Notes under the pieces: generated by a model
The model's database searches: none
The model's input: the letters and a program-made list of their open reading frames with translations, nothing else
Told to the model about the DNA's origin: nothing
Position numbers and translations under genes: made by a program
In this document: positions 9,103 to 55,578 of the stretch, piece after piece
How positions within the stretch are numbered: position 1 is the first letter of the stretch
Layout: every line of letters starts with the position of its first letter
Sequence record: NC_048054.1
Direction: 5' to 3' (one strand)
DNA length: 64,000 bases

Positions 9103-9363
9103 ATGATTTACGAACGCGAAGAACTCGAAGACATGCCTCTCGATGTGCTTTATCATCTGGCGAGCGCCAAAGGTCTTCTGGACGATCTGGACGATGATGA
9201 CGATGCGCCTGATCGTGAAGTGCTGGTGGGCATGATTCTGGACGCCCAGAATGAAGACGAACAGGCAGAGCAAGATGCTGCCGACAAACAACGCGCCGAA
9301 GATGATCGCGACCCACGTATCAATCGTCGTGATGGTCAAGACGGCTCGGACGACTACTGCTAA
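9103..9363 (+). CDS. small acidic protein with Rho-N/HeH-like helical module
   Basis: Start revised to ATG 9103 (GGAG RBS); LEDMPLDVLYHLASAKGLL...DREVLVGMILDAQ follows the Rho N-terminal pattern L-x-x-M-x-L-x-x-L-x-x-L-A...R-x-x-L-V-x-x-I-L. Confidence 0.6.
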   Translation: MIYEREELEDMPLDVLYHLASAKGLLDDLDDDDDAPDREVLVGMILDAQNEDEQAEQDAADKQRAEDDRDPRINRRDGQDGSDDYC

Positions 9364-9367
9364 CACA

Positions 9368-9395
9368 AGGGCTGCCATTGCTGGTGGCCCTTTTT
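9368..9395 (+). terminator. Rho-independent terminator
   Basis: AAGGGCTGCCA...TGGTGGCCC followed by TTTTT. Confidence 0.75.
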
Positions 9396-9441
9396 CATTT
9401 CTGTAAATATCTCGTACACAAACAACAATGCGAGATATACA

Positions 9442-9810
9442 ATGCGCCGCTTCGTTATCGTCTTCAACGTCAGTCAGGCAGAGCTTGATGACCGCCGCTT
9501 CTTTCAGTCTAAGTTCAATATCGTTTCGTCACTGCGCCGCGCTCGCTGCGTCTTCCTCGTCGTTCGTGAAACCAAACAGGTGCTGTGTGTTTCAGAACTG
9601 ACCTATCAACCGAGCGTCGAGCCTGGCATTCGTCAGGTAGACTTCGATGCGCCGCGTGACGTAACAGCATACGTGCTGCCTTTCGCAGAACTCACCACAG
9701 CGATGATCAATAACTCGCAAGACCCGAGCATTCGTTACTTCGGCCGCAGCCTTGATATGGATATGGACCAGGCCAAACGCTTTCACACTCAACTGGAGAT
9801 TGTCCCATGA
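9442..9810 (+). CDS. hypothetical protein
   Basis: 122-aa ORF downstream of a TCTGTAAATA motif (9400). Confidence 0.75.
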   Translation: MRRFVIVFNVSQAELDDRRFFQSKFNIVSSLRRARCVFLVVRETKQVLCVSELTYQPSVEPGIRQVDFDAPRDVTAYVLPFAELTTAMINNSQDPSIRYFGRSLDMDMDQAKRFHTQLEIVP

Positions 9811-10052
9811 GTCAGACACTAGGCGCCTCGCTTGGCGCTCGCTTCGCTGTTACTTCTCAGGCCAACATTGAGAAGCGTAAGAAGCGCGATCCCAAAAACA
9901 GAACGCTGAGTTGTGCCGCTACCTCAGCGCAGCATGATGCTGTTGGTATACTGGCGAATAAACTCAACGTGTCTCGCTCTCGTGCAGTAGAGATCGCAGT
10001 TGAAGAACTGTTGGCTAAGCATGGCGTTAAGGTGCAGACCGACAATGAGTGA
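9807..10052 (+). CDS. ribbon-helix-helix (CopG-like) DNA-binding protein
   Basis: RTLSCAATSAQHDAVGILANKLNVSRSRAVEIAVEELL fits RHH beta-strand, helix A, S-R-S turn and helix B. Confidence 0.65.
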   Translation: MSQTLGASLGARFAVTSQANIEKRKKRDPKNRTLSCAATSAQHDAVGILANKLNVSRSRAVEIAVEELLAKHGVKVQTDNE

Positions 10053-10407
10053 CACGCACATCTACTGCAAGCTGTATGGCGTCCAGCACCGCTTAAAGAT
10101 CACGGCGTTCAACTTCATGAAGCAGCCGAACATGATCACGGTTGATTCGTCTGACGTGCTCAAGATGCTGCCGCTGATTAATGTCGGTGCAGCATACGAT
10201 ACGTACACGCCGTACAACGTACTCAAAGCTGGACGTGCTGACTTCAAAATCAAATTGATCGAGCGCACTGATGCGAACGTCTGGCGCTATGAGTTCGAAG
10301 ACTATCGTGGTCAACGCTTCGAAACGTACCTGATACGGAGACACTATGAAACGCCTCGGGATTGTAACGGTGTTGTCATTAAAGGACAAACAACCCAAAT
10401 CATGTGA
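10045..10407 (+). CDS. hypothetical protein
   Basis: Start revised to ATG 10045, overlapping the upstream stop. Confidence 0.75.
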   Translation: MSDTHIYCKLYGVQHRLKITAFNFMKQPNMITVDSSDVLKMLPLINVGAAYDTYTPYNVLKAGRADFKIKLIERTDANVWRYEFEDYRGQRFETYLIRRHYETPRDCNGVVIKGQTTQIM

Positions 10408-10981
10408 CCTCGATATCACGCCTGTATCGAAAGACGAAGAATGGGGCTCGCTGAGTCCCTTTCATTTAGGTCCGTGCAGAACGCCAGATGGCGTCATGTT
10501 TCACAACATGGAAAACTTGTGGCAGTACAGCAAGGTCTATGAAGAACATCTCGTCAATTCGAACGATCTATTTCACGGCGAGATTGCTGCCGACTGGTGG
10601 GCGTGGCATTTGAAAGGCAGTATGACAAAACAGGCGCATCGCTATCCTATGGGAAAAGGCCAAAAGGCTCTGTTCTCTAAATGGGGCGACTTGCGCCTTT
10701 CTTACGTTGCCGCACGAAAACAGATCTATGTGCCTGAGTACGCAAAGCTGGTGGTGCAGCAAAAGATGTTCAAACGTTTACTCAAGGAGTATAAGAAAGG
10801 CGCTCACATAGTTTTGCGCGACTATGACACCTACGATATCCAGAAGGCATATCCAGACGCACGTAGTCCCTGGATATCTGCCATTCAAAACAACAATGCT
10901 AAATTCGGACATGCGTTCGTTATTGCATTGGCCTTGCTCTTCCACGAACGACCACTATGGTACAACCAATGGGTGATATGA
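10346..10981 (+). CDS. NADAR-superfamily-like protein (putative ADP-ribose processing)
   Basis: GGAG RBS; LSPF...HNMENLWQYSKVY resembles the NADAR E-x-x-[YFW]-Q-x-x-K motif; also ARKQIYVPEY and GHA near the C-terminus. Confidence 0.5.
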   Translation: MKRLGIVTVLSLKDKQPKSCDLDITPVSKDEEWGSLSPFHLGPCRTPDGVMFHNMENLWQYSKVYEEHLVNSNDLFHGEIAADWWAWHLKGSMTKQAHRYPMGKGQKALFSKWGDLRLSYVAARKQIYVPEYAKLVVQQKMFKRLLKEYKKGAHIVLRDYDTYDIQKAYPDARSPWISAIQNNNAKFGHAFVIALALLFHERPLWYNQWVI

Positions 10982-11286
10982 AATACGAAGCCTGCATTGA
11001 TCTGTTCGAGCGTCAAGGTAACATGAACCTGCCTGTGCTTCCTAAATGCGAGCTACAGGCGACTCTATTTGATCGGTACACGAAGACGCGAATACCTGTT
11101 CGCTTCAACGCCACAAACGTGATCAAAGTTAAAGGCGTTACTTGTGGTAGTTTGCAGATCTTTGATAGCGTTAACCTTATTATCTGGTCATCGTTCGATA
11201 TTGGTCGCTTTACTTTATATATCGAACGGGTACGCAAAACAGACGAGCGCACAGAAGCCCTACAATCAGATGAACTCTGCAAATAA
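10978..11286 (+). CDS. hypothetical protein
   Basis: Start revised to ATG 10978 (ATGA overlap). Confidence 0.7.
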   Translation: MKYEACIDLFERQGNMNLPVLPKCELQATLFDRYTKTRIPVRFNATNVIKVKGVTCGSLQIFDSVNLIIWSSFDIGRFTLYIERVRKTDERTEALQSDELCK

Positions 11287-11331
11287 CTGGTCAAAATAGC
11301 CATTCTTTTTAGTACCAGTCTATGATATAAT
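11276..11331 (+). promoter_or_regulatory. sigma70-type promoter with conserved upstream element
   Basis: TCTGCAAATAACTGGTCAAAATAGC; 32 nt to perfect TG-a-TATAAT (11326-11331). Confidence 0.8.
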
Positions 11332-11361
11332 AAAAGCGAGCGCTATTGCTCAAAACAACAC

Positions 11362-11375
11362 AAGCTGAGGAGCTT
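11362..11375 (+). promoter_or_regulatory. SD-in-loop hairpin
   Basis: AAGC-TGAGGA-GCTT upstream of ATG 11379. Confidence 0.65.
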
Positions 11376-11378
11376 AAC

Positions 11379-11696
11379 ATGTCATCTTCTACTACTCTGA
11401 CTTTCATCTTCCCAGAACTGACCTCTCTGGAAGTTTCTATCGGTAACGGCGTTGTCCCCCACTATCTGGGAATTGCCGAGAACATGGACAAGACGTTTAG
11501 CGATGTTAAGGCGCTGCGTTTGATGCAAGACTCGAACGTCGTAGGCGTTATGAGCCGCTTCGATCAGTCATTGCTTAATATGCTGATCGCTCGCCACGAA
11601 ACGCACGAACATATTCGTTGTCGTGACGCCATTGAGAACGGCACCGAGCATTTCCCATCTACCTGTCTCTACCTGAAGGTAGCGCACCACCGCTAA
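11379..11696 (+). CDS. hypothetical protein
   Basis: Start revised to ATG 11379. Confidence 0.8.
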   Translation: MSSSTTLTFIFPELTSLEVSIGNGVVPHYLGIAENMDKTFSDVKALRLMQDSNVVGVMSRFDQSLLNMLIARHETHEHIRCRDAIENGTEHFPSTCLYLKVAHHR

Positions 11697-11741
11697 GATT
11701 TGTGAAGGGCCTTCGACGAGGGTCCTTTGAAAATCAAACCA

Positions 11742-11757
11742 TGTTCTGAGGAGAACA
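11742..11757 (+). promoter_or_regulatory. SD-in-loop hairpin
   Basis: TGTTC-TGAGGA-GAACA upstream of ATG 11761. Confidence 0.7.
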
Positions 11758-11760
11758 ACA

Positions 11761-12114
11761 ATGCCAGCAACTGAATTGCCTATCGACGCTCGCGCTTTTG
11801 ATGACCTGAGCAATAGCAACTTCCTGCAGGTCTGCAATGCAATCTCTTTCTGTGTGTCTCGTGGTGACCTTGAGTTTCGTCATCATATCAAAGGCCGTCA
11901 CATTGACGTTGCATACCGAGCTGGTGGCCATAACACTTTCGGTATTAGCACCATCCGCATCCTGATGCCGTCAGAAGTTCTGCGTGAAGATATCGTAGAA
12001 GACTTCGAAATCATTCACGGCGATGCAGTCATTCAGATTGAACGCCAGAAAGATTCGTTCTCGACGTTGCAGCGTATCGCTGGCGCAGTCGAAGCGTGTA
12101 TGCCTAAAAAGTGA
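11761..12114 (+). CDS. hypothetical protein
   Basis: 117-aa ORF with strong RBS. Confidence 0.8.
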   Translation: MPATELPIDARAFDDLSNSNFLQVCNAISFCVSRGDLEFRHHIKGRHIDVAYRAGGHNTFGISTIRILMPSEVLREDIVEDFEIIHGDAVIQIERQKDSFSTLQRIAGAVEACMPKK

Positions 12115-12161
12115 TTGTTGCTCGCAGGTTCTTACGAGAGCCTGCTGTCAACATAACCCCA

Positions 12162-12177
12162 TAAGCTGAGGAGCTTA
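12162..12177 (+). promoter_or_regulatory. SD-in-loop hairpin
   Basis: TAAGC-TGAGGA-GCTTA upstream of ATG 12180. Confidence 0.7.
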
Positions 12178-12179
12178 AC

Positions 12180-12584
12180 ATGAAACAATATCCACAACGT
12201 GGTCAAGTATACACGCTGAAAGAAATCGAGAACGACCTCGAACTGCGTGACAGCCCGTTCCTGCGTTTCGTCCCGCAGAAAGTGCGTTACATCGGGATGC
12301 CTGCCGGTGTGCAGGTTATCCAGCAATCTCATATTGCTAACCTGTCTGAACTCGAAGGCTGGGCAGACACTAAGTGGTCCTTCGTTCGTGAGACCGACGA
12401 GTGGATTCCACTTTTCCGCGCTGTGGACGATGCTGAGATCGAAGCGCTGTGTGTCATTGAGCCTGACGTGTCCGAGTTCCGCTCTGACAACACGTTGTTC
12501 GTTTACCCTAAAGGTACTGAGTGCAAACAGTATGACGGGTATGACGAAGAAATTCACGGTGAACTGCTGGAACGTGACGAATAG
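12180..12584 (+). CDS. hypothetical protein
   Basis: 134-aa ORF with strong RBS. Confidence 0.8.
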   Translation: MKQYPQRGQVYTLKEIENDLELRDSPFLRFVPQKVRYIGMPAGVQVIQQSHIANLSELEGWADTKWSFVRETDEWIPLFRAVDDAEIEALCVIEPDVSEFRSDNTLFVYPKGTECKQYDGYDEEIHGELLERDE

Positions 12585-12591
12585 TAAACAA

Positions 12592-12622
12592 GGGATGCCC
12601 GCATTGGTGGGTGTCCCATTTT
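12592..12622 (+). terminator. Rho-independent terminator
   Basis: GGGATGCCC...GGGTGTCCC then ATTTT. Confidence 0.75.
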
Positions 12623-12641
12623 GCATTCAAGGACTAATCCT

Positions 12642-13094
12642 ATGGAAATGTTTGATCGCTCAAACGTGATTAAAGCAATCATGCGTAACCTGAAAGATGC
12701 GCGGAGAATAGAAGACATACGCACGTTCGACGACAAGGTATACTTCAAAGTTAACGGCGTAGGCTACTTTGTCACTGGTAACTATCCTAATCTGAAAGTT
12801 GTATCTCGCGGTCAGTATGACCAAGAGATGATGAACCAACTCAACTATGTTTATAGGCGCAAGAAGGGTGTAGAAGAAGATACGCCAATGCGCATAGCAC
12901 GTACCACTCGCAATCTTACGCTTACGCAGATAGCAAAAGAGCTTGGTATGGACCCAGGCAATCTGAGTCGAATCGAACGAGGTATGCAGATACCTTCTAT
13001 GGAACTGGCGGAACGTATCGCCGCGTATTTCGATAACACAATAACAGCAATTCAAATTTGTCATCCGACTTATAAGGGGAATCCAAATGCTTGA
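12642..13094 (+). CDS. XRE/Cro-CI helix-turn-helix protein with an N-terminal domain shared with the next gene
   Basis: C-terminal MRIARTTRNLTLTQIAKELGMDPGNLSRIERGMQIPSMELAERIAAYF is a typical XRE HTH. Start uncertain (12642 or 12648). Confidence 0.8.
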   Translation: MEMFDRSNVIKAIMRNLKDARRIEDIRTFDDKVYFKVNGVGYFVTGNYPNLKVVSRGQYDQEMMNQLNYVYRRKKGVEEDTPMRIARTTRNLTLTQIAKELGMDPGNLSRIERGMQIPSMELAERIAAYFDNTITAIQICHPTYKGNPNA

Positions 13095-13626: not shown

Positions 13627-13638
13627 GAGGAAATAGAA

Positions 13639-14519: not shown

Positions 14520-14528
14520 GGGACTATC

Positions 14529-15880: not shown

Positions 15881-16086
15881 ATAGAAAGATGATTGCCTGG
15901 GCAGCTTTGGTGATCTTCTGCGTGGTGGGCGTGGTAGCTTCCACTGTCGCACTCAATCACTACAACTTCCTGTTGAGCACGTTGCTCACAATCGTATTTG
16001 GCGTTGGCCTCGTTATCTGCGTGAAGTGCTTAGACGCGGCCACATGGGATTACTGCGTTAAGAAAGGAAAAGAAAAGAATGGCTAA
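15877..16086 (+). CDS. small two-TM membrane protein
   Basis: Two hydrophobic stretches and a basic C-terminus. Confidence 0.7.
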   Translation: MNRKMIAWAALVIFCVVGVVASTVALNHYNFLLSTLLTIVFGVGLVICVKCLDAATWDYCVKKGKEKNG

Positions 16087-16612: not shown

Positions 16613-16614
16613 TT

Positions 16615-31644: not shown

Positions 31645-31702
31645 TGACGCTACTCACACGAGGAGCCTTACGTGGGTTCCTCATTATCGTAATATAAACA
31701 CT

Positions 31703-32017
31703 ATGGCAAAGAAAACTTATCTGCTACCTCGTGAGCGCCCAAGCCCGTTGCCTAATCTACGAGCCTATCTCGCGTTTCTCGCCCGGAAGCCTAATGCTAA
31801 TCGCGCAGTATTAGAATCGTATTGCAAAGCAAGTCTGGCACAAATGGCGCGCGGCCGTTTCTTTGTAGGTAAGCTCTTTGGCTACAAGGTGTATACGAAA
31901 TCGAACAAGCTCGCATACACGGTTGTGTGGATTGACCCATACAACTACGATTGTCTTGTTCTAAACCATCAAAGGAGAGAAGTAGAGTTTAAAAACCTTT
32001 ATGGCCTGCTTTTATAG
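31703..32017 (+). CDS. hypothetical basic protein
   Basis: ATG 31703 chosen; the track's upstream extension overlaps the previous gene. Confidence 0.6.
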   Translation: MAKKTYLLPRERPSPLPNLRAYLAFLARKPNANRAVLESYCKASLAQMARGRFFVGKLFGYKVYTKSNKLAYTVVWIDPYNYDCLVLNHQRREVEFKNLYGLLL

Positions 32018-32054
32018 TTAGGTCCTAGCGCCTTCACACTAGGGGAATCTTCCG

Positions 32055-32732
32055 ATGATAACTGTTCTTAACAATCGTACCGACGAGGTAATTAAACGCC
32101 TGAACGTAGCAGTATGGGTATGTGTCGCAATCATGTTTGCTGTCTTCATCGCAATCGTGAGTAACGCAAACGCCAGTATGTCTACAGGCCCTGACAACGC
32201 CATTGATCTTTCATCTTCCGTGTCACTCGATCCCTCCAATCGTGTGGCAACCAAATACAAGGAGATAGAAAAGGCAGTAGCCGCAAAAGAAGAACGAAGG
32301 CCCAAACGTTATGTAACGAGAGAGCGCCTCCGACAACTCTATGCGCACTTGCCGCATCCGTCTGACTTAGGCAAGCAGATTGATTTGGCCGCAGAGAAGT
32401 ACAACGTAGATGCAAAATTGCTTCTATCGATCTGCGTGTCCGAGTCGCATCTTCGTGCAAAGGTCAGGAACAAGTCCGGAGCTACAGGCCTGTGTCAAAT
32501 CATGCCTAAAATGCACGGACGTTCTGTACGGGAACTCATGGACTACCGAATCAATGTTGATCAGGCAGCCCAGATTGTTGCGTTACTAAACAAGCAGTGT
32601 AGAGGCAGACGCGCCTGCGTCATCCAAAGTTACAACACTGGTTGGGGAGCATATTTGAGAGGGGTACGTGCCCCACAATATTTAGCGAAAGTACAGACTG
32701 AGTATCGCCGCAAGCATACTCCATCTTCCTAA
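32055..32732 (+). CDS. soluble lytic transglycosylase (SLT family) with N-terminal TM helix
   Basis: AAEKYNVDAKLLLSICVSES (catalytic Glu), SGATGLCQIMP, NVDQAAQIV, SYNTG; TM segment VAVWVCVAIMFAVFIAIVSNANA. Confidence 0.9.
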   Translation: MITVLNNRTDEVIKRLNVAVWVCVAIMFAVFIAIVSNANASMSTGPDNAIDLSSSVSLDPSNRVATKYKEIEKAVAAKEERRPKRYVTRERLRQLYAHLPHPSDLGKQIDLAAEKYNVDAKLLLSICVSESHLRAKVRNKSGATGLCQIMPKMHGRSVRELMDYRINVDQAAQIVALLNKQCRGRRACVIQSYNTGWGAYLRGVRAPQYLAKVQTEYRRKHTPSS

Positions 32733-32747
32733 TAAGAGGACATAATA

Positions 32748-35770: not shown

Positions 35771-36345
35771 TGGAACAGATTGATATGTTTGATACTCAGG
35801 GTGCGCATGAAATCTCCGAGTACACCGAACTTGATTCAGATCGTTTGCATCCATCTGTGGTTACGCGCAATGACCGTCGCGTGATTGCTGCGTTCGGCCA
35901 GCCTGTACTTAGTGATGAATATCTTGCTAAGTACCCAAGTATGCGTCCCGGTAAATTGAAGTTTCGCAAGAAGCTGGTTGTGATTCATGAGTTCGTGCTC
36001 GTCACGCACGATAAACTGAAAGCCAGTTTATTGAAAAAGCAGGGCGACGTGCGCCGTATGAGTAACGCCGATCCGCAGTACCTGATCAATGTGTACAACC
36101 ACACAGAGAAGGTAGCGCTGTTCCTGCGAGACTTTGAAGACTTCATGAGTCACTTCATGAATGCCCTTCACCTGTTTACCGTGGCAACTGTGTATGATGG
36201 CAGACTGCTGGTGTTTGCAGAGAACGGCGATCCGCTTGTTACCTCAGAAGAAACGCTGGCGATGCTCACCGAGATTGAGCACTTCATCAACAAAAGCAAA
36301 GTGTATCGCGTATACTCACAACACGCCATCTACCGTACAATCTAA
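35770..36345 (+). CDS. hypothetical protein
   Basis: 191-aa ORF, TAATG overlap. Confidence 0.8.
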   Translation: MEQIDMFDTQGAHEISEYTELDSDRLHPSVVTRNDRRVIAAFGQPVLSDEYLAKYPSMRPGKLKFRKKLVVIHEFVLVTHDKLKASLLKKQGDVRRMSNADPQYLINVYNHTEKVALFLRDFEDFMSHFMNALHLFTVATVYDGRLLVFAENGDPLVTSEETLAMLTEIEHFINKSKVYRVYSQHAIYRTI

Positions 36346-36397
36346 TCTAATCTATCAATCACTGCGGCGCTTACGGGTGTCGCATAGGAGAAACATT

Positions 36398-37999
36398 ATG
36401 TCATTCGATATGCGTCAAAACGTACTCATGGTTCGCTCTCTGATTCACGGCCAACCGTTCTACAATTTCTATAACGCCGAAGGTCTGGACTTCACCCTGC
36501 CTGGTTATCAACTCAAAGAGATCTATGATCGTCACTTCGAAGGTCGTATGTCAGGCGTCACCACTTACTGGGGATTCTCGAACAAGTCGAACTGTGAGTC
36601 TTTCGAGTTTGCAGAGAACGGTGATCTGTTGTGGCATGTTTCTCTGAATGCGACCTGTCATACGCTGCTTCCTCTTGAGATGGTTATAGGCCACGAAGGA
36701 TTTAACGTTATCAACGGTTTTGAGATCAGCGATCATAAACGTACCGTGATGAAGATTCACCAGAAAGCTGTTGGTCGCACTGTAGAGAACCTGACGTGGT
36801 TCCGCGACCTGTCTGAAAACCATATGCGCGAACTGCTGTGTTCACTTGGTCACGGCCCGCTGCGCATCGCAAAAGCAGACCGCGAAGAACTGATTAAGAT
36901 TCATCGTGACTGGCAGCGTAAGCATGACGAAGAATTTAAATACACGCACAATGCTTGCGGTATTGACCCTGACGATAAACTGCCTGCTGACCTGTATGAC
37001 GATCACGGCAAGTGGTTGCGTCAACGTCACATGGCGAAAGGCAAAACGCTTGAGATGATGGCCAGCGAGCTTGCTAATCTCGTTCGCATCTTCGATTTGT
37101 ACATCGGTGATGACGACTTCGATCATATGAATCCTGATTGGGATGAAGGTCTGCTTCGTGTTGCACAGGCTTATATCTACGGACCGAACGCCAAAGAGCG
37201 TTTCGATGCAGTGAAGTATGATCCGCAGTTCATTGTCAATGGCATCTATGCGCTGGCGAAAGACATGAACTGGATTCATGTTAACGAAGAATCTCAGGAC
37301 TATCAAGAGTCGCTGCTTCGTCGCCTGATGCAGGAATTGAAAAACGAAGTTGAGCGCCCTGACGGTGTGTTCGTTGTTGAAGACGGTCGGGTTCTGCTTA
37401 AGGCTGTGTCTGCTACTGCCGATACTGACGTGGTGGATGAGGTAGAAGAAGATGAAGACGCCGCCGCGGGAGAGGAAGCCGCAGAAGTGCGCACCTTCCT
37501 TGAAGGTTTAAGCGATAGCAAGTTGCGCCACTACGCGAAGTTGTTCAAGTTAGCGAGCAAAATAAAGCTCCTGAAAATGGATCATGCAGCGCTGGTTGAC
37601 CTGTGCGCTGATTACTGCGGGTCTAACTGGCCAGAAGATCTGGAAGAAGACGAAGCTGAGGCCGAGCCTGAGAAAGAACGCGAGCCTCGTAAATTCCCTG
37701 CAACTAGATCGGCCGATACGTATGACTATGTACGTATTCGTAAAGTTCTCGTTTGGCTGAAATTGCTTACTGGTAGTATGTCAAGCCGTGACGCAGACTG
37801 CTCCCGTGAAGATGTGGAGCTGAACCGCAAGAAAGCTGTAAGCGTTTTACGCAATGCAGTCAAAGACGGAAAACTGGACACACTGAAAGAGATTCATCTT
37901 AAATCTCTCGCATACGCTCTGACAAAGATGAAAGATGGTGATCGCTATCCGCGTGATACAGATTACCTGAAAGAGCTAATTAAACACGCACTGCGTTAA
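36398..37999 (+). CDS. hypothetical protein with HeH-like modules and acidic linkers
   Basis: Start revised to ATG 36398 (AGGAG RBS); LSENHMRELLCSLG...READ and LSDSKLRHYAKLFKLASKIKLLKMDHAALVDLC. Confidence 0.8.
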   Translation: MSFDMRQNVLMVRSLIHGQPFYNFYNAEGLDFTLPGYQLKEIYDRHFEGRMSGVTTYWGFSNKSNCESFEFAENGDLLWHVSLNATCHTLLPLEMVIGHEGFNVINGFEISDHKRTVMKIHQKAVGRTVENLTWFRDLSENHMRELLCSLGHGPLRIAKADREELIKIHRDWQRKHDEEFKYTHNACGIDPDDKLPADLYDDHGKWLRQRHMAKGKTLEMMASELANLVRIFDLYIGDDDFDHMNPDWDEGLLRVAQAYIYGPNAKERFDAVKYDPQFIVNGIYALAKDMNWIHVNEESQDYQESLLRRLMQELKNEVERPDGVFVVEDGRVLLKAVSATADTDVVDEVEEDEDAAAGEEAAEVRTFLEGLSDSKLRHYAKLFKLASKIKLLKMDHAALVDLCADYCGSNWPEDLEEDEAEAEPEKEREPRKFPATRSADTYDYVRIRKVLVWLKLLTGSMSSRDADCSREDVELNRKKAVSVLRNAVKDGKLDTLKEIHLKSLAYALTKMKDGDRYPRDTDYLKELIKHALR

Positions 38000-40863: not shown

Positions 40864-41079
40864 ATGAGCCGACGTCCTACACAAGATGAAGTGAACGGCC
40901 AGATAGCTGCCGCCGAAGAACAGCGCTACAATGAGCGTGAAGCGCGTTATGCTGATATGTCAGATGACGATCTACGCGATGCTCTGTTGGAGCAGGGTCT
41001 CGTTTTTGTCGAAGGCGACGACGTAGACGACTACAGCCGACAAGACTGTATCAGACTGCTTATGGCGAGCGGCTACTGA
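40864..41079 (+). CDS. small acidic protein with HeH-like module
   Basis: Start revised to ATG 40864; MSDDDLRDALLEQGL...YSRQDCIRLL. Confidence 0.7.
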   Translation: MSRRPTQDEVNGQIAAAEEQRYNEREARYADMSDDDLRDALLEQGLVFVEGDDVDDYSRQDCIRLLMASGY

Positions 41080-41333: not shown

Positions 41334-42065
41334 ATGCCTACTACTTCACGCCCTAAGACAGAAGACAAATTCTCCCGCGCTCGCGCCGCTAAGAACTCGC
41401 CAAAGCGCGTTAAAGGCAAAAAGCAGTCTGATCGTCCAGAGAATCTGAGCGAGAAGAAACGACCAACACCACGCGGGCCATCTTCCGCTAAACCTCGTCA
41501 ACTGCCTCCGGGATATGGCTTCAAGTCTAAGGCTACAGGTGAACGTGCGCCTGACCCGTCACGCAAAGAGTTCGCTGCCAAAAATAAAGTGCGCGATGAA
41601 GAACGCGTGTTCAATTTGGTTCACGCAATTCTTTCTGCGTGGAAAGCAGATGTGGGGAACGCCGAGCACACGGCAGCCTCAGCTGGCATCATCAAAGTGT
41701 CACGTCGTAAGATTGAAGGCGCCTTGCGTGACCTCAAGAATACGCGCTTCACTAAGATCCCGACGCTCATTAATGACGTCCTCGTGTATAACGAAGTCTG
41801 CAATGAGTTCGGTCAGTGGGTGTACGTCGAGCATGATTCTCCTGATTGGATTTTCGTTCGACTGCCTGAAAACAGTACGCAAGTGATTCGTGCTGATATC
41901 AGTTCCGACCGTAGTGGCGAAACGTCTGCTGCCGTGACGACTTCTGTTGAGGTACTGCTGGATAATACTTACCTCGAAGACGATGAAGAGGAGATTCCTG
42001 AGAACGTCGAATATGACGACGAAGATGAATCTGACGCCAACGAAGAAGAGGATGAGGAAGAATAA
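41334..42065 (+). CDS. hypothetical protein with basic N-terminus and acidic C-terminus
   Basis: K/R/P-rich first 80 aa; D/E tail. Confidence 0.85.
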   Translation: MPTTSRPKTEDKFSRARAAKNSPKRVKGKKQSDRPENLSEKKRPTPRGPSSAKPRQLPPGYGFKSKATGERAPDPSRKEFAAKNKVRDEERVFNLVHAILSAWKADVGNAEHTAASAGIIKVSRRKIEGALRDLKNTRFTKIPTLINDVLVYNEVCNEFGQWVYVEHDSPDWIFVRLPENSTQVIRADISSDRSGETSAAVTTSVEVLLDNTYLEDDEEEIPENVEYDDEDESDANEEEDEEE

Positions 42066-42514
42066 TGACCACTTCTATTCGATCAGCCTCAGAAACAGCC
42101 GCAATGATCATTGAAAACGTTTCTCTGTATTCGCAAGAGAAGGCGCATGAGCACACGCTGCCGCGTTTTAAAATGTCAGATACGGCGATACGTCGAATCT
42201 CTGGACATGTTCGCTTCCTGCCTGAAAGCTATATCGAGCAACTCACCTTCGAGTTGCGGCAACTTGATTGGCTGATGGCTAGATATGACTCTGGCATGTT
42301 TATCTTCATGGGGTATGCAGTTGCAAAGAACTGGACGACACTGACGGCAAAACGAGTAGTGCCGAACGACGACCTCACTCTTGAGTACGATACTTGGACG
42401 CTGCCTGAGTTACAGGGTTTCGCCCAACGTAACGACTTTTTGCAGCCTGGTGAAGAAGGTTTCCATAACAGAGATGCACTGATTCGCGCCATCATTAAGG
42501 GCGAGACTCACTGA
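42065..42514 (+). CDS. hypothetical protein with C-terminal Rho-N/HeH-like module
   Basis: YDTWTLPELQGFAQRNDF...NRDALIRAII. Confidence 0.75.
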   Translation: MTTSIRSASETAAMIIENVSLYSQEKAHEHTLPRFKMSDTAIRRISGHVRFLPESYIEQLTFELRQLDWLMARYDSGMFIFMGYAVAKNWTTLTAKRVVPNDDLTLEYDTWTLPELQGFAQRNDFLQPGEEGFHNRDALIRAIIKGETH

Positions 42515-42531
42515 CTCTGAGGAGTAATCGA

Positions 42532-42684
42532 ATGAAACGACCTACTAAGCGTGTTGAAGTAGAAGACCCAGACATTGCTAAGATGCGCAAGCGCCTGGTG
42601 TCTGCGAAAATCATCAAGCCAGAAGCTGCTGCAAAGCTGTCTAGCAATGATGTAGTGAAGCTGTTCACGTATTACAGCGCATAA
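42532..42684 (+). CDS. 50-aa protein consisting of a single helical module (missing from the ORF track)
   Basis: GAGGAG RBS; MKRPTKRVEVEDPDIAKMRKRLVSAKIIKPEAAAKLSSNDVVKLFTYYSA, then a 10-bp hairpin. Confidence 0.75.
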   Translation: MKRPTKRVEVEDPDIAKMRKRLVSAKIIKPEAAAKLSSNDVVKLFTYYSA

Positions 42685-42846: not shown

Positions 42847-44478
42847 ATGGCACGTATCGAAACTAGCACTAACCTGGTTGGCAAAACTATCGTCCTGCTG
42901 AACGGCACCAAATCTAAAATCGAAGATGCAATCGCGTCTGGTTATAAAGTGAAGGGCCTGACCAAGCGTATCGCCACCCGCTGCATCATCAAAGAAGGCT
43001 CTCACTTCCGCGAAATCGAGCGCATGAACATGAGCCAGCTGGAAGATACAGGCGAAGGTTATGTTAAGCTGAAAGATGCGAAAGCGTCTGGCAAGAAAAC
43101 TGCCAAGAAAGAAACAGCCGCGCCGAAAGCGTCTGGTAAGAAAGCTGGCACCAAGAAAACTTCTGGCAAGAAAGATGCCAAGCCGTCGAAAGACAAAGAG
43201 CCGAAAGTTCGCCGTAAATCTTCCGAAGAGCAATCCGAAGATTACCAGAATCTGGCACACGCTATCATCAAAGGCGGCAAAGCCAAGCCTGCTGTTGAGA
43301 TCGAAGCTGTAGACGAAGCGCTGACCGATAGCGTAGCGAAACGCCTCGCCGACTACGTGCTTAACTCAGACGTTGCGCGTGTTTGTGCTGACAACAAAAC
43401 GCCGATCGCTAACGCACTGGACGTTACTTACGGTGCCGAGTATGCGCCTGAAGGCAACGTGCTCCAGATTACTCTGAACCTGCAATATGCGGCGCCTGTT
43501 AAAACTGTTGCTGCTGCGCCTGAGCTGGACGAAGCTGTTGCGAAACGTGCTGCCAAGCTCGCTGCTAAGAAAATTGGCAAAGTGTTGGCGAAAGCAATCA
43601 AAGCTGCGTTCGACCTCGAAGATGCGAACGACCTGCTGCCAGGCACCGTGCTGACTAACGACGGTACTGAGTTCGTGTTCGTCGGTGAGTCTGCGAAACA
43701 TGCAGGCAAAGCGCTGATGTATAGCGCCGATACTGACGGCTTCAAATCATTCGGTGCCGACAAACTGGCCGACTTCGAAATCGTCGCTGATGAAAGCGAA
43801 GAAGAGGAAGACGAAGATGAAATTGAAGACGAAGATGAAATCGAGGAGGAAGAAGAAGAGGAAGAATCCTCCGAAGACGAAGAAGACGGTGAAGAAGACG
43901 ATGGCGAAGAAGAAGACGGCGAATCGCAAGATGCCGAATACGAGTTCGTCGCAGTCGATGCCGATCAACTTGAACTGGTTAATAAGAAAGTAACCGCTAA
44001 GTATCACGCCGCTCTGGCTGAACGCTTCGGTGTTGATGAAGAGGCGCTGGCCCCTGGCCTGATGCTGACTGATGGCGAAACTACTTTCGCTTACCTCGGC
44101 TGCGATAGCAAAGGTGGTCTGCTGGTTATCGACCTGTCTGACGATGCAGACGAAGATGATAACGTGCTGGTGTATAGCAAAGCCGATATCAAAACTCTGA
44201 CCGACTTTAGCCCTGTGATCGATAGCGGTGAAGCTGACGATTCAGAAGAAGAAGACGGTGAGGAAGAAGACGGCGAAGAAGAAGACTTCGAAGAAGATGG
44301 CGAAGAGGAAGATGACGAAGAAGAGGAAGACGACTTCGAGTTCAACGACCTGCCGTCCGAAGATCTGGAAGACCTGTCTGATGACGAACTGCGTGACCGC
44401 GTAGTTGAAGCCGGCCTGACCACTGTGCGCAAAGCTGAAAACATGACTGCTGCACAACTGCGCAAGCTGCTGAAATAA
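42847..44478 (+). CDS. modular acidic protein (shared N-domain, Lys-rich linker, two repeated beta domains, D/E tracts, C-terminal HeH-like module)
   Basis: Repeats LLPGTVLTNDGTEFVFVG and LAPGLMLTDGETTFAYLG; C-terminal LSDDELRDRVVEAGLTTVRKAENMTAAQLRKLL. Confidence 0.9.
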   Translation: MARIETSTNLVGKTIVLLNGTKSKIEDAIASGYKVKGLTKRIATRCIIKEGSHFREIERMNMSQLEDTGEGYVKLKDAKASGKKTAKKETAAPKASGKKAGTKKTSGKKDAKPSKDKEPKVRRKSSEEQSEDYQNLAHAIIKGGKAKPAVEIEAVDEALTDSVAKRLADYVLNSDVARVCADNKTPIANALDVTYGAEYAPEGNVLQITLNLQYAAPVKTVAAAPELDEAVAKRAAKLAAKKIGKVLAKAIKAAFDLEDANDLLPGTVLTNDGTEFVFVGESAKHAGKALMYSADTDGFKSFGADKLADFEIVADESEEEEDEDEIEDEDEIEEEEEEEESSEDEEDGEEDDGEEEDGESQDAEYEFVAVDADQLELVNKKVTAKYHAALAERFGVDEEALAPGLMLTDGETTFAYLGCDSKGGLLVIDLSDDADEDDNVLVYSKADIKTLTDFSPVIDSGEADDSEEEDGEEEDGEEEDFEEDGEEEDDEEEEDDFEFNDLPSEDLEDLSDDELRDRVVEAGLTTVRKAENMTAAQLRKLLK

Positions 44479-50955: not shown

Positions 50956-50968
50956 TATCGTCTGATTG

Positions 50969-50995
50969 AGCGGCTCGAAAGGGCCGCTTACTTTT
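50969..50995 (+). terminator. Rho-independent terminator
   Basis: AGCGGCTC-GAAA-GGGCCGCT then TACTTTT. Confidence 0.8.
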
Positions 50996-51012
50996 CTCGG
51001 GGATCTGTAAAC

Positions 51013-51843
51013 ATGACACAAGAAGTAGATCACGAAGCTAACATCATTCAGATGCTTAGTAGCCGTGACGATAAAATCCGTGAACTGACCAACGAGCTTG
51101 AAGAAGCTGTTGGTGATAAGAAAGATGTGGAGAACGTCTTAGAGGACACAGTGCGCGGCAATACTGTGCTGCGTGTCGCACTCAGACGTAAAGTACGTCA
51201 ACACGCCGTTGAAATCTCACTGCGCGATGAACGCATTCGTGAAATCACTGGATTCTGCAACGAGCAGACCGAAGAAGTTCGCACACTGAAAGCTGAACTC
51301 GAATCTGTAAAGAGTAAACAGAAGCAAGCGAATCCTCTGCCGTTTGCCCTGCATATGATAATGTGTGCTGGTATTAGCCACTACCATAATGTCGTACAGC
51401 AACTCGCACACGGATCTGTAAACCGTGAAACGAACAAAGTGGCCAGAGCGCTTGCTGATTTGAACCGCACCGACGTGGTAGTCAAACAGCCTTCACTGTA
51501 TCGCTCTGTCGCAATGTATTGTTCTGCTGTTGGTGCCGACGCTCCTGCAAGCGCTGCTCTACTTGCCGAACTCAATAACTACATTCGAGCGAACATCGAC
51601 CTGTTCCTCAAAGATACCCAGTACGAACAGTCACGTAAAATGTTACACTGGGTGTGGGAGGCGAAGAACAACTCTGCTCATATGGGCTTCGCCGCACGTA
51701 ACATCTGTCAGGCCTTCGACTGGTTGCCTATCGCATTTGAGAGCGATGCTATTGACCATCTCGAAGATGACGATGATTACGAAGAATTGTTCTGTGAAAC
51801 ACTTCTGAAAATTTGTACGCATCTGATTCGTGATAGCTTTTAA
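51013..51843 (+). CDS. hypothetical protein with N-terminal coiled coil
   Basis: Heptad-rich first 105 aa; TCTGTAAACA directly upstream. Confidence 0.8.
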   Translation: MTQEVDHEANIIQMLSSRDDKIRELTNELEEAVGDKKDVENVLEDTVRGNTVLRVALRRKVRQHAVEISLRDERIREITGFCNEQTEEVRTLKAELESVKSKQKQANPLPFALHMIMCAGISHYHNVVQQLAHGSVNRETNKVARALADLNRTDVVVKQPSLYRSVAMYCSAVGADAPASAALLAELNNYIRANIDLFLKDTQYEQSRKMLHWVWEAKNNSAHMGFAARNICQAFDWLPIAFESDAIDHLEDDDDYEELFCETLLKICTHLIRDSF

Positions 51844-51943
51844 TAATCTGTAAAAGTTACCTGCAATCGAAACTGTAAACACTAATTGAAGTTCGAACCG
51901 AGCAACAAGCTCACACTTTATAAAATCCCGGAGCATTAAACAA

Positions 51944-52489
51944 ATGGCTAAAGTAACTAAAGGCACTTCACTGGCACCTACCCTGGCATCTCGCATCGCT
52001 AAAAAATCTGGTTCCATTAGCACCTCTAAAGTGAAGCCTGCTGAACTGCCGCACGACATTCTGATCGAAACAGTTCAGGCTGTTGAGCTGATTGGTTTCA
52101 TTACCGACCGCACCGATAACAGCGTGACCATTCGTCATAAAAAAGGCCACGGCTCTTCTGCGCAGATCATCTCAACCTTCGGTCCGAACCAAATCCTGTC
52201 TATCCTGGGCGATGCTGGCCAGCACGGTAGCGTTACTGCTCTGGTTAACGCGCCGGTTCGTGAGTACAAAGGCTTCACCGTCAAATACGTCGGCGCCATG
52301 ATTCACGCAACCTCTGTTGAAACTGGCGAAGTGATTCACATCAACACCGCACTGCCTGGCTTCAACGTTCGTCCTACTGTAAACGAAAACGCGGCCGCTA
52401 AGAAGTATGGCACCGCTGCTCCAACCAAAGCTAAGAAAGGCGATAAATCTGACAAGCCTGCGAAGCTGGTAAAGAAAGTAAAAAAGTAA
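51944..52489 (+). CDS. hypothetical beta-rich protein with Lys-rich termini
   Basis: GGAG RBS; basic N- and C-terminal tails; preceded by CTGTAAA motifs. Confidence 0.85.
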   Translation: MAKVTKGTSLAPTLASRIAKKSGSISTSKVKPAELPHDILIETVQAVELIGFITDRTDNSVTIRHKKGHGSSAQIISTFGPNQILSILGDAGQHGSVTALVNAPVREYKGFTVKYVGAMIHATSVETGEVIHINTALPGFNVRPTVNENAAAKKYGTAAPTKAKKGDKSDKPAKLVKKVKK

Positions 52490-52638
52490 TAAAGTCTGAC
52501 GAAGACTTTTAACTGACTTTCTGAAATCTGTAAACATTAAGTATGCAGCGAGATAAAATGTTCTCGCTGCCTGTCTCTCGAAATCTGTAAATCTTAATTG
52601 AAGCAACGTCGCTTCTAATCAAACAGGAAAAACAAATC

Positions 52639-53460
52639 ATGGCTAAAGCTGCTAAAGCAACCGTTAACACCGCATCTCTGGTTCTGGCTAAAATGCTGGG
52701 TGTTGTAGTAGAGAACGCGACTGACAAAGAAATCGCTGCGCTGCTCACCTCTGCCGGCCTGACCGTGTCTGGTGGCAAAGTTGTTAAAGCTGACAAAGGC
52801 GGTAAAGCTGCTAAAGGCAAAAAGTCTAAGGCACCAACCGTTGCTGAAATCGTCGCTGCTGTGAAAGACGAAGAAGAACTGGATATCTCCGGCGTCGATG
52901 AAGACACTCTGCGCGAAGCAGTTGTCAAAGCCAAACTGTCTACCGCCAAGAAAGCTAAAGCGCTGGACGAAGACGAACTGCGCGAACTGCTGAACGATAA
53001 CCTGGGCGGCGAGTCCGAAGAGGACGAAGACGAAGACGAAGAAGAGGACGACGAAGACGAGGACGAAGACGACTCGGACGACGAAGATGAAGACGGCGAC
53101 GACGACGAAGACGAAGACGACGAAGACTCTGATGATGAAGAAGAGGACGACGAAGACGGCGACGACGACGACGACGAAGACGAAGACGACGAGGACGAAG
53201 AAGAGGACGACGAAGACGAAGATGAAGACGAGGACGAAGATGATGAACTCGACCTCGATTCACTCGACGAAGACGAACTCCGCGCCCTGGTAATCGAACA
53301 CAAGCTGGCCACCGCCAAAAAGGCGAAGAAAATGGACGAAGATGAACTGCGCGAACTCTGCGAAAGTCACTTCGGTGGTGAAGACGACGAAGACGACGAA
53401 GACGAAGATGAAGACGACGAAGACTTCGACGATGAAGACGAAGACGAAGACGACGAATAA
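52639..53460 (+). CDS. hyperacidic low-complexity protein with two HeH-like modules
   Basis: AGGA RBS; basic N-terminus; two copies of DED(T/E)LR...KL(S/A)TAKKAK..DEDELREL flanking an ~80-residue near-pure D/E tract. Confidence 0.9.
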   Translation: MAKAAKATVNTASLVLAKMLGVVVENATDKEIAALLTSAGLTVSGGKVVKADKGGKAAKGKKSKAPTVAEIVAAVKDEEELDISGVDEDTLREAVVKAKLSTAKKAKALDEDELRELLNDNLGGESEEDEDEDEEEDDEDEDEDDSDDEDEDGDDDEDEDDEDSDDEEEDDEDGDDDDDEDEDDEDEEEDDEDEDEDEDEDDELDLDSLDEDELRALVIEHKLATAKKAKKMDEDELRELCESHFGGEDDEDDEDEDEDDEDFDDEDEDEDDE

Positions 53461-53678
53461 TATCTTCTGACCGGCGCGCCCCTCTAGTTCTCTGTGAATG
53501 AGCGAGGGGCAAATATTCGAGTTAAAATGATTCGAATATTTTTGTAAAAAGTTTCAAAATTCCTTGCAGACGTATGTTGAATATAATAATGTACGTCTAC
53601 AGGGAAACAAACCTGAACAAATTTATCTTTCATCCAGCGGTGAAAACGCCGCATCAAAAACAAAGTAAGGAATATCGT

Positions 53679-54215
53679 ATGTCTAAGAAAGCAATCAGCG
53701 GCCTGAACAAAGAAATCCGTGCCCTGGACAAATCTGAAAAAAATCTGGTTAAAACTGCTGCCAGCCTGACCAAAGAAGCCGAAGCGATCGCACAGCGCCG
53801 CGCCGGTCTGACCGCTCAGGTTGAAGCTCTGTCTGCTGACGGCGCTGCTCCTGCTAAAGCGACCAAAGCTGCTAAACCAGCGAAAGCTGAGAAAGCCGCT
53901 AAGCCTGCTAAAGCAGAAAAAGCTGGTAAGAAAGCGAAAGCTGAGAAAGCCGAAAAGCCTGCTAAGGCCGAGAAAGCTGGTAAGAAAGCTAAAGCAGAAA
54001 AACCTGCTAAAGCTGAGAAAGCCGCTAAACCTGCTAAAGCAGACAAAAAAGCAAAAGCTGAAAAGCCGGCCAAAGCTGATAAAAAAGCTAAAGCCGAAAA
54101 ATCTGCTAAGCCTGCGAAAGCAGACAAAGCTGCCAAGAAAGTGAAAGGCGATAAAAAAGCCAAAGGCGGCAAGCAGAAAAAACAAGAAGAAGATTTCGAC
54201 TTCGAAATGGAATAA
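53679..54215 (+). CDS. histone H1-like (AlgP/Hc2-type) Lys/Ala/Pro-repeat protein
   Basis: Start revised to ATG 53679 (AAGGA RBS); N-terminal coiled coil, eight PAKA(E/D/T)K repeats plus KKAKAEK repeats, acidic EEDFDFEME end; no TM segment. Confidence 0.8.
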   Translation: MSKKAISGLNKEIRALDKSEKNLVKTAASLTKEAEAIAQRRAGLTAQVEALSADGAAPAKATKAAKPAKAEKAAKPAKAEKAGKKAKAEKAEKPAKAEKAGKKAKAEKPAKAEKAAKPAKADKKAKAEKPAKADKKAKAEKSAKPAKADKAAKKVKGDKKAKGGKQKKQEEDFDFEME

Positions 54216-54248
54216 GCAAGTAATCGCACACTAGCGGTCACTTGATCG

Positions 54249-54280
54249 AAAGGGCAGCGCTGACGAGCGTTTGCCCTTTT
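54249..54280 (+). terminator. Rho-independent terminator
   Basis: AAAGGGCA-GCGC...GCGT-TTGCCCTTTT. Confidence 0.8.
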
Positions 54281-54312
54281 GTCTTATCTACACGAATTTT
54301 CGAGGTAATGCC

Positions 54313-54813
54313 ATGTCTGCCGAACATCTGCTTAACGACGACCTGCCCGACGACACTAAGCCGTCAAAACAAGCTCCAGAAAAACCTTCCTACTACGACC
54401 TGATGACGCTACGCCTTGAAGCTGGCGTCCGCCTTGCTCGTTCCCTCAAAACTCTGTGTGACGCTAACGTCCTACCTACGTCTGGTGGTGGCTCGACGCT
54501 TCTTGCTGCTGCTCTCGATGTAGCTGAACGCCACTTCGCTGATATCTGCATGGGACTTGTGCCAGTTCGTGACGGCACTGACGTATGCACAATCAAAATG
54601 CGTGAAGACCTTCCTGCGTGTGTCGAAGCCTTTCGTATTGTTGTTATGGAACATGCGCAACGTGAAGCCCTTGAGCGTGAGTGCCGCAACATGATCGCTG
54701 ACGGTAACGGCTTCAAACTTCTCACTCAGCCTCAAGTGCTGCACATCGAAAACAAACACGTCTGTGACGAAAACTGCGATCACAGAAAAGATGATTACCA
54801 GTGGAAATGCTAA
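54313..54813 (+). CDS. hypothetical protein
   Basis: Start revised to ATG 54313 (GAGGT RBS); C-terminal HVCDENCDH. Confidence 0.8.
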   Translation: MSAEHLLNDDLPDDTKPSKQAPEKPSYYDLMTLRLEAGVRLARSLKTLCDANVLPTSGGGSTLLAAALDVAERHFADICMGLVPVRDGTDVCTIKMREDLPACVEAFRIVVMEHAQREALERECRNMIADGNGFKLLTQPQVLHIENKHVCDENCDHRKDDYQWKC

Positions 54814-54837
54814 TACTAACCTGATAGGATTGAGACA

Positions 54838-55578
54838 ATGGGCCAGAAACTGTCTGAACAAATCAACCGCTATTTTAATCTCATGGAAAAAATCCGTGAG
54901 CAAATGTACCGCGTCCTGCCAGTCAGTGATCGCTATCTGTGTGTCGTAAGTTTCAGCACACAACTCCAGGCACTCCAGTGTGTACTGGTGAGTAAGGCCT
55001 CGTTAATGGAAGCAAAGCTGATCGAAGGGCTAACGGGTCAAGAGCTGGTGACGTATGGCCAGTACCTGCGAACTGCCGAAGAGTGGGTTGCTAACGGTAT
55101 GCAGGACGATTATCCGTTCACTCAGGACAAAGACGTGTATGCCGAGTACCGCAGCCTGACGCGCGATGACTCTCAGCCTGTACCTGAAATGGACGACGAA
55201 GAAGACCTCGACGAACAAGAGCTGGATAACCTGCGCACCTCAATTCTCTGCTCAGACAAAGCCACCCTGATGCAGATGTATGCAGATGAAAATCTCGGCA
55301 CAAAAGCCAAAGCCGCTGACATGGATGCGGAGCAATTGCAGGAAGCTCTGTGTGAACACTACGGTCTTAACCCTGATGTTCCTGTCAGACTGGTCGATGT
55401 TGTTGGCGAAATGGTTAAGCGCATTGAAAGCCTTCCGAATCATGCTGCCCTCAAAGAAGTTGATCTCCTGACTAAGGAAGAACTGCTTAGTCTCGCAGAC
55501 GCGTGGGACATTGAAAAGACAGCGCATGAGCACACTATGCGCTCTCTTGTTAAGGGCTATCTGCTGCGCCGTACCTAA
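54838..55578 (+). CDS. hypothetical protein with C-terminal HeH-like modules
   Basis: SDKATLMQMYADENLGTKAKAADMDAEQLQEALCEHYG and LTKEELLSLADAWDI. Confidence 0.8.
   Translation: MGQKLSEQINRYFNLMEKIREQMYRVLPVSDRYLCVVSFSTQLQALQCVLVSKASLMEAKLIEGLTGQELVTYGQYLRTAEEWVANGMQDDYPFTQDKDVYAEYRSLTRDDSQPVPEMDDEEDLDEQELDNLRTSILCSDKATLMQMYADENLGTKAKAADMDAEQLQEALCEHYGLNPDVPVRLVDVVGEMVKRIESLPNHAALKEVDLLTKEELLSLADAWDIEKTAHEHTMRSLVKGYLLRRT

Follow-up and report, generated by a model that had tools for sequence, protein, structure and literature searches.

Is a short two-helix segment that recurs, on acidic linkers, in a series of otherwise unrelated jumbo phage proteins a true family, and if so what is it for? 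The question is raised by the window studied here, a 64,000-nucleotide stretch forming the final 64 kb of Dickeya jumbo phage vB_DsoM_AD1 (AD1; NC_048054.1, 261,658 bp, genus Alexandravirus; 100% identity), in which a window coordinate is the record coordinate minus 197,658. A first-pass annotation, made from the sequence alone, had reported a Rho-N/HeH-like module in at least ten open reading frames (ORFs) and proposed it as an address tag that brings unrelated proteins to one hub. All ten ORFs are real, corresponding to gp249, gp289, gp301, gp308, gp310, gp311, gp312, gp317, gp320 and gp323; each is annotated 'hypothetical protein', as are nearly all genes of the 20-kb block concerned. The count of ten was overstated: five copies in four proteins are firm, two more, in gp311 and gp308, are probable, two units are equivalent in slot and uncertain in relationship, and four of the claimed ORFs or segments found no support. 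The firm copies form a real, previously unnamed family of ~40-residue modules on poly-acidic tethers, carried by four to seven AD1 proteins that are otherwise unrelated. No description of the module was found in the literature searched.

Membership was judged with profiles. A hidden Markov model (HMM) built from the four clearest copies matched only the gp312 C-terminus, gp320 (twice) and gp323, both among the window ORFs and among 1,937 six-frame ORFs of the genome. Circularity was removed by leave-one-protein-out HMM searches of 495 six-frame ORFs, which recovered gp312 at E = 2e-5, gp320 (full sequence) at E = 1.2e-11 and gp323 at E = 6e-3. A wide profile, made of 87 modules from across the larger family and controlled with reversed decoys, gave E = 7e-11 to 2e-24 for the five core copies, which we call type A, and E = 5 or worse for every decoy; overall, decoys never fell below E = 2. 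The core copies and their acidic neighbours, the latter located mostly by a scan for 20-residue windows with at least 70% aspartate or glutamate (D/E), are as follows.

37418..37486, + strand: acidic stretch ahead of the gp301 module, read from the sequence
37487..37627, + strand: type A module of gp301 (aa 364-410), a diverged copy; wide-profile E = 7e-11
44221..44364, + strand: poly-acidic tether of gp312 (aa 459-506), running into the module; acidic-run scan
44353..44475, + strand: C-terminal type A module of gp312 (aa 503-543); wide-profile E = 2e-13
52873..53016, + strand: type A module a of gp320 (aa 79-126); wide-profile E = 1.6e-20
53017..53241, + strand: poly-acidic spacer between the gp320 modules (75 aa, 95% D/E), by composition
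53242..53385, + strand: type A module b of gp320 (aa 202-249); wide-profile E = 2e-24
53386..53457, + strand: acidic C-terminal tail of gp320; acidic-run scan
55231..55374, + strand: type A module of gp323 (aa 132-179); wide-profile E = 1.8e-16, helices in the AlphaFold2 model

An iterative search fed with AD1 and the orthologous regions of Yersinia phage fHe-Yen9-02 and Erwinia phages Y3, Yoloswag, SNUABM_7 and Alexandra converged at 20 domains with zero reversed-sequence decoys, or at 23 domains with relaxed inclusion. Independent PHROG profiles cross-detected the copies: phrog_30618, of the gp320 family, found gp312 and also gp301 (aa 346-427, E = 4e-5), and phrog_33433, of the gp312 family, found gp320 (aa 79-120, E = 1e-8). 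The gp301 copy is diverged in AD1; at the homologous position Alexandra's orthologue carries a canonical one (E = 1e-17). The gp312 module is kept at the C-terminus in all five orthologues examined. Core copies are conserved across about 50 phages, and module a of gp320 is likewise found in about 50 related phages. Taken together, profiles built without the protein under test supported gp301, gp312, gp320 (twice) and gp323, were borderline for gp308 and gp311, and did not recover the gp310 C-terminus, a second gp323 candidate, gp317, gp249 or gp289. The HMM and Pfam search that the first-pass annotation had proposed as a check thus yielded a significant family for the five core copies, with no Pfam threshold reached.

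These results bear on the simplest alternative, that the resemblance is a compositional coincidence of amphipathic helices with no common origin or function. For the outer candidates it holds. The loose motif, written as a regular expression, matched 90 times in the AD1 proteome against 80 ± 9 in shuffled proteomes (about 1 per 1,000 residues), and was enriched only in the 20-kb neighbourhood (13 matches against 5.3 ± 2.2 expected); since the motif occurs at chance frequency, candidates matched by eye carry no weight alone. The gp249, gp289 and gp317 segments, which the first-pass annotation had counted, found no support from profiles or Pfam. Those in gp317 were the best windows within that protein, yet fell at about the 99th percentile of controls, which is not significant once multiple testing is allowed for. 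For the five core copies, coincidence is refuted by the leave-one-out E-values, the decoy-free iteration, the PHROG cross-matches and the recurrence in about 50 phages, and as an account of the module it is extremely improbable.

Nor do the copies look recent. Nucleotide identity between AD1 copies is 36–62%, and third codon positions agree about half the time at conserved residues, values that rule out recent duplication or gene conversion between copies. The AD1 copies are instead old, separately conserved paralogues.

The attachment to acidic linkers was confirmed. Just nine of the 336 AD1 proteins have a strongly acidic run, and four of those nine (gp309, gp312, gp317 and gp320) lie in this neighbourhood; all core copies abut either a strong run or a shorter acidic stretch. 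The association is real. Across six phages the inter-module spacer of gp320 ranges in length from 51 to 75 aa, at 90–98% D/E, with the modules conserved.

Tether and module usually travel together. The acidic stretch and module of gp301 constitute an insertion that AD1 and Alexandra have and the orthologues in SNU7 and Y3 lack. Orthologues of gp323 have a common N-terminal domain, followed according to lineage by type A and a second unit (type D), by type D only, or by neither; thus some have the type A module and others lack it. Another case concerns gp309 and its neighbours, where two further sequence types, B and C, come into play.

41976..42062, + strand: acidic C-terminal linker of gp309, an empty slot in AD1, from orthologue comparison and the acidic-run scan
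42386..42511, + strand: type C module at the gp310 C-terminus (aa 108-149), a different sequence type, found in the same slot in orthologues
42550..42675, + strand: type B module of gp311 (aa 7-48 of a 50-aa ORF); wide-profile E = 0.09-0.27 over the full module
55474..55569, + strand: second gp323 candidate, type D (aa 213-244), a possible relative; AlphaFold2 helix 213-223, 7-residue loop, helix 231-244

Among gp309 orthologues from 11 genomes, the linker is followed by type B (SNUABM_33, SNUABM_22, L037, Alexandra), by type C (SNU7, Yoloswag) or by nothing, and the Yoloswag orthologue of the gp310 N-terminal domain has no type C module. AD1 itself has nothing in the gp309 slot: its type C module is carried by the following gene, gp310, and its type B module makes up the free 50-residue ORF gp311. 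AD1's closest relative, SNUABM_33, has a single 276-aa gp309 with a gp311-type tail fused to it. Because that relative keeps gp309 fused to type B, gp311, a predicted ORF, is probably a tail orphaned by insertion of gp310; the whole interval from 41334 to 42684 (gp309, gp310 and gp311) has the appearance of a gene rearrangement. Types B and C occupy one gp309 slot, and therefore types dissimilar in sequence share an architectural slot. The tether and module are a portable cassette, gained, lost and swapped between orthologues of gp301, gp309 and gp323. [quoted passage not shown]

How far do the other types belong to the type A family? The evidence relating B, C and D to A is weak, and it differs from type to type. 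Type B is a probable member. In the wide-profile search gp311 outranked every decoy, and HHalign placed type B in register with type A over 30 columns, at low probability, ranking thirteenth among 360 control windows. A 50-aa AD1 protein in BFVD, taken to be gp311 from its length, has a model that superimposes on the type A model to 0.8 Å over 34 residues. Type C showed no profile link to type A, and HHalign of C against A, B and D revealed no relationship. Against the full Pfam Ish1 profile type C scored 21.5 bits (E = 3e-4) for the SNU7 copy and E = 0.2 for the AD1 copy, below the gathering score. Type D is kept in Alexandra-type gp323 orthologues that have no module A; HHalign aligned it to type A out of register, and it has no Pfam match. 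The gp310 C-terminus and type D are best described as equivalent in slot and uncertain in relationship. A possible bridge is a metagenomic protein with four repeats (P0012), a protein that begins like type C and continues like type A and whose repeats look intermediate; types A and C also both give full-length, sub-threshold Ish1 matches. In P0012 (on two short contigs, L045:1119-1976 and L046:319-1176) the four tandem modules have serine-rich rather than acidic linkers, with 'CGPKKGENRW' ahead of each.

Two further segments of AD1 proteins fall between the firm copies and the unsupported ones.

40939..41067, + strand: gp308 candidate (aa 26-68), with a long acidic loop; wide-profile E = 9e-4 to 0.011, helix 1 only
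36806..36904, + strand: gp301 aa 137-169, weakly supported; HHalign to type A at probability 51-55%, helix 1 only

The gp308 segment is probably a degenerate copy. The gp301 segment was the best-scoring of the 360 HHalign windows against type A and is conserved in all four gp301 orthologues, with no Pfam support. When whole proteins and cut-outs (gp317, gp249, gp289, this gp301 segment, the gp320 N-terminus, and types B and D) were searched against Pfam, there were zero HeH-clan matches.

What kind of fold is this? The first-pass annotation's Rho-N/HeH-like description is plausible from predicted structure and from structural neighbours (E = 0.7–5), and finds no Pfam match above threshold. An AlphaFold2 model of gp320 module b, from an alignment of 36 sequences, has a helix at model residues 10–19, a short connector helix at 25–30 and a helix at 33–45, with a mean predicted local distance difference test score (pLDDT) of 84.6 and a core above 90. 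In the full-length gp323 prediction an alpha/beta N-terminal domain (aa 1–108) is followed by a disordered acidic linker (aa 110–122, pLDDT <50), the module A helices (141–150, 156–160 and 164–174) and then the helix-loop-helix of type D (213–223 and 231–244). In the predictions, then, two helices of ~10–14 residues and a connector of ~7–12 residues make an independent unit, which is what we took as defining an HeH domain. A search of BFVD, a library of viral structures, returned the family's own members first. Named neighbours among the top 50 were mainly Rho-N-terminal-domain proteins (eight) plus one SAP-domain protein, with template modelling (TM) scores of 0.56–0.70 and E-values of only 0.7–5 each; root-mean-square deviations for the eight Rho-N neighbours were 1.3–5.2 Å (1.3–2.4 Å for the four closest; E = 0.7–3.6). 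Foldseek against PDB gave nothing below E = 2 for the module model and nothing below E = 0.17 for the module and gp323 models, 40 residues being below the method's power.

Sequence searches of named families stayed below threshold. Rho N-terminal domain, SAP, LEM and Ish1 belong to what we take to be one LEM/SAP 'HeH' fold clan. Pfam Rho_N (PF07498) was absent for 36 type A members and for the B, C and D cut-outs even at E <= 1–10, and the Pfam HeH model was never among the matches. SAP (PF02037) reached at best 17.7 bits (E = 0.0015–0.0027, partial profile, two of 36 members) against a gathering score of 23.9, and LEM (PF03020) at best 17 bits (E = 0.0028–0.0046, helix 1 only, three of 36 members) against 24; the gp312 module gave E = 0.0027 for SAP and 0.0046 for LEM. 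Module b of gp320 matched Ish1 (PF10281, 37 positions) over its full length at 15–16 bits (E = 0.014–0.026), where the gathering score is 26.6 bits. NCBIfam gave zero matches, and when the type A and type C alignments were run as sequence profiles against PDB, all matches were insignificant. Hence 'HeH/Rho-N-like' is a plausible look-alike description of the models, with membership in a named family not established. Like Rho_N, SAP, LEM and Ish1 domains, the module has ~35–45 residues, two amphipathic helices, a connector with a basic residue and a conserved hydrophobic pattern, and such domains are often terminal appendages on flexible linkers. Unlike them, the AD1 family has a connector ~3 residues longer with a predicted short helix, helices that are strongly acidic in most copies, and poly-D/E tethers. 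It also resembles phage proteins annotated as 'HeH/LEM domain-containing' or 'Rho termination factor N-terminal domain-containing', which have a terminal HeH-type unit and several of which are among the structural neighbours; one example is an 84-aa HeH-type phage protein adjoining a capsid gene (PMC10221047). Those proteins, however, pass InterPro/Pfam models and often lie in head-gene blocks, whereas the AD1 family fails the models. Two further BFVD neighbours come from Dickeya phage vB_DsoM_JA29, A0A384ZXP6 (721 aa; 0.9 Å over 38 residues) and A0A384ZXK6 (276 aa; 3.1 Å over 48), and HeH-type appendages may be widespread across this broader group of phages.

SAP, HeH and Rho-N domains usually bind nucleic acid, and typical SAP domains are basic. 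The module could itself be a small nucleic-acid-binding domain that works through its basic connector. The tether would then inhibit the protein by mimicking nucleic acid (compare the T7 gp2.5 tail), and the carriers would be chromatin-like or nucleoid-associated proteins rather than clients of a protein hub. The most conserved module positions do include the connector K-A pair, lysine-rich segments occur also in gp309, gp312 and gp320, the structural neighbours are Rho_N and SAP proteins, and the module co-occurs with ssDNA-binding (single-stranded-DNA-binding) cores; acidic tails of phage SSBs are reported to compete with DNA for the binding surface (PMC5686142, reference 14 therein). Yet both long helices are strongly acidic in most type A copies (net charge -2 to -4 for gp320 and gp323), unlike a typical basic SAP domain, and there was no significant match to any DNA-binding family. 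Net charges of whole modules run from -4 to +5, which argues against a single simple electrostatic mode. We regard direct nucleic-acid binding as conceivable and on balance unlikely.

Where the module occurs outside AD1 points to another role. The module is rare when judged by sequence. In IMG/VR all 17 matches fell within the same clade of 259–268-kb phages. An exhaustive HMM search of 1.84 billion representative proteins yielded 30 carriers (E <= 1e-3); three or four copies stand in tandem in some of them, and single-copy carriers are common. One of these proteins (P0023) begins with an SSB core homologous to AD1's own SSB, gp238 (BLASTP E = 3e-18; both phrog_15004), and continues with four or five modules on acidic spacers; its gene lies directly upstream of a RecA-like (RecA_N) gene. 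A 137-kb phage contig (L049) has, in order, a tail-less SSB of the gp238 family, a two-module gp320-like protein and RecA, and in two more (L077, L078) a two-module gene stands directly downstream of the SSB. Three other proteins (P0008, P0025 and P0030) have the module on a second SSB family (phrog_378/DUF669), in genes that, within replication blocks, come after those for a PD-(D/E)XK nuclease and an AAA_24 ATPase. Going by these annotations and gene orders, the module in other phages decorates the C-terminal tails of two unrelated SSB families or makes up a separate two-module protein whose gene stands between SSB and RecA/UvsX. A helix-turn-helix protein (P0026), with three such motifs, matched weakly to half a module only and was treated as a cross-match rather than a member, and in P0004 no SSB likeness of the N-terminal domain was detectable.

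Acidic C-terminal tails are characteristic of SSBs in bacteria and phages, and bring in polymerase, helicase and recombination mediators (PMC5686142, PMC5928155, PMC3936761, PMC10359462), through a disordered acidic tether and a short docking element for replication and recombination partners (PMC5928155, PMC5686142, PMC3936761). We favour, tentatively and at slightly less than an even chance, the reading that the AD1 module is an SSB-tail-like docking tag for replication and recombination machinery, because the cassette is laid out like an SSB tail and, in other phages, is physically fused to SSBs. On this reading a clade-specific ~40-residue unit of Rho-N/SAP (HeH) type (helix, basic connector with a short helix, helix) is joined to its carrier almost always by a disordered poly-acidic tether. 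The flexible tether would present the small module for docking, as the SSB C-terminal tail does, and the module would bind a common partner in the phage replication or recombination machinery, bringing its carriers to one place. Tether and module have been inserted, appended, lost and exchanged as a cassette among gp301, gp309/gp310/gp311, gp312, gp320 and gp323. The likeness extends to E. coli SSB-Ct, T7 gp2.5, the T4 gp32 A-domain and HK620 SSB, all disordered acidic tethers ending in a docking element. It has limits: classical tips are peptides of 6–10 residues and the AD1 family is a predicted folded unit of 40 residues, and the AD1 cassette is on non-SSB proteins while AD1's own SSB has no module. 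A more ambitious form of the docking tag, in which interchangeable HeH-type tails (A to D) on poly-acidic tethers would be a recruitment code to SSB-coated ssDNA or a replication/recombination factory, with upwards of half a dozen unrelated clients, gp320 as an 'SSB tail without an SSB' and gp311 as a natural free module, strikes us as speculative and distinctly unlikely.

On the hub, the first-pass annotation had offered DNA, RNA, RNA polymerase or a replication compartment. The ssDNA/SSB replication-recombination machinery is a likelier hub than either a phage nucleus or RNA polymerase. The replication and structural genes of AD1 are T4-like, and the phage encodes a sigma factor of its own; neither a split RNA polymerase nor a shell protein is annotated. 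AD1 is one of the PaBG/Lu11-like jumbo phages and not one of the nucleus-forming phiKZ-like group (PMC7412058). A phage-nucleus or RNA-polymerase hub is unsupported on these grounds. The module-bearing genes are in an early, replication-side block that adjoins the topoisomerase II genes.

Several observations weigh against the docking tag. AD1's gp238 ends in an acidic and basic low-complexity tail that lacks the module, in phages of the AD1 clade modules are absent within 3 kb of the SSB, and the SSB association elsewhere depends on PHROG annotations and a few metagenomic lineages. Only architecture, the shared weak Ish1 match and the one intermediate repeat protein tie types C and D to type A. 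The module has no significant match in Pfam, NCBIfam or PDB, its spread of net charge possibly reflects different binding targets, and the common docking partner is putative. The module carriers of AD1 also showed no SSB-family match in PHROG, Pfam or NCBIfam scans. The analysis shows that the family exists and the cassette is mobile, gives a confidently predicted secondary structure and links the module to SSB by fusion and adjacency; we infer docking as the function, this machinery as the hub, and an equal job for types B, C, D and A. The first-pass interpretation is partly supported: the module is an unnamed HeH-like appendage whose tie to SSB-tail biology can be tested.

The tandem arrays invite one more explanation, in which modules are self-associating 'stickers' that, with poly-acidic and poly-basic blocks, form multivalent scaffolds condensing into a replication factory, the partner being the tag itself. 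It would suit proteins with up to four or five modules, and gp320, which has little beyond two modules, a basic patch and acidic spacers (95% D/E). The AD1 SSB tail alternates poly-D and poly-K/S blocks, and the weak Pfam votes include adaptor-type helical domains (EAD7, in 12 of 36 members). Self-interaction is, however, only hypothetical: the gp323 model, with a predicted TM score (pTM) of 0.41, shows no confident packing between its two helical units, and many carriers have a single copy. We consider self-association quite improbable, more so than nucleic-acid binding.

The gp238 gene lies ~1.1 kb upstream of the window, at NC_048054.1 195242-196516 (L006:45243-46514). Its C-terminal 170 residues are alternating pure aspartate/glutamate and lysine/serine runs, an unusually long block polyampholyte tail for an SSB.

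If the docking tag is correct, the SSB-tail principle of recruitment would reach beyond short acidic tips to take in a folded HeH-type module, and the family would be a new subfamily in a fold shared with eukaryotic SAP and LEM domains. Identifying the hub could give a cellular address to a whole group of uncharacterised proteins. A small, portable and tractable tag would be a direct handle on how replication is organised, and accessory proteins targeted, in jumbo phages that do not form a nucleus.

Some features of the carriers stand apart from the module. The gp301 frame is open for 79 codons further upstream (36161-36397), and has an ATG at 36161; alignments with orthologues start where the annotated protein does. 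The gp312 protein (42847-44478) has a lysine-, alanine- and proline-rich, histone-H1-like stretch at about aa 75–125 and a ~55-residue domain present twice (about aa 262–305 and 401–455), with a poly-acidic run after each, upstream of the terminal module. The N-terminal domain of gp323 (54838-55164) is confidently predicted as alpha/beta, with three strands and three helices, and is conserved in all orthologues examined; no PDB structure matched it significantly.

Elsewhere in the window no tRNA was found, and the gp294–gp295 interval (31645-32747) is 1.1 kb without a RefSeq coding sequence, a stretch occupied by a 225-aa ORF with an ATG start (32055-32732, + strand). Outside the window, long poly-acidic runs occur in gp137 (NC_048054.1 103284-103706) and in gp140 (105682-107676, annotated 'ATPase'; the run is at aa 266–390), with no module in either. 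These two genes flank the major head protein and protease genes, and their products may be scaffold-like proteins.

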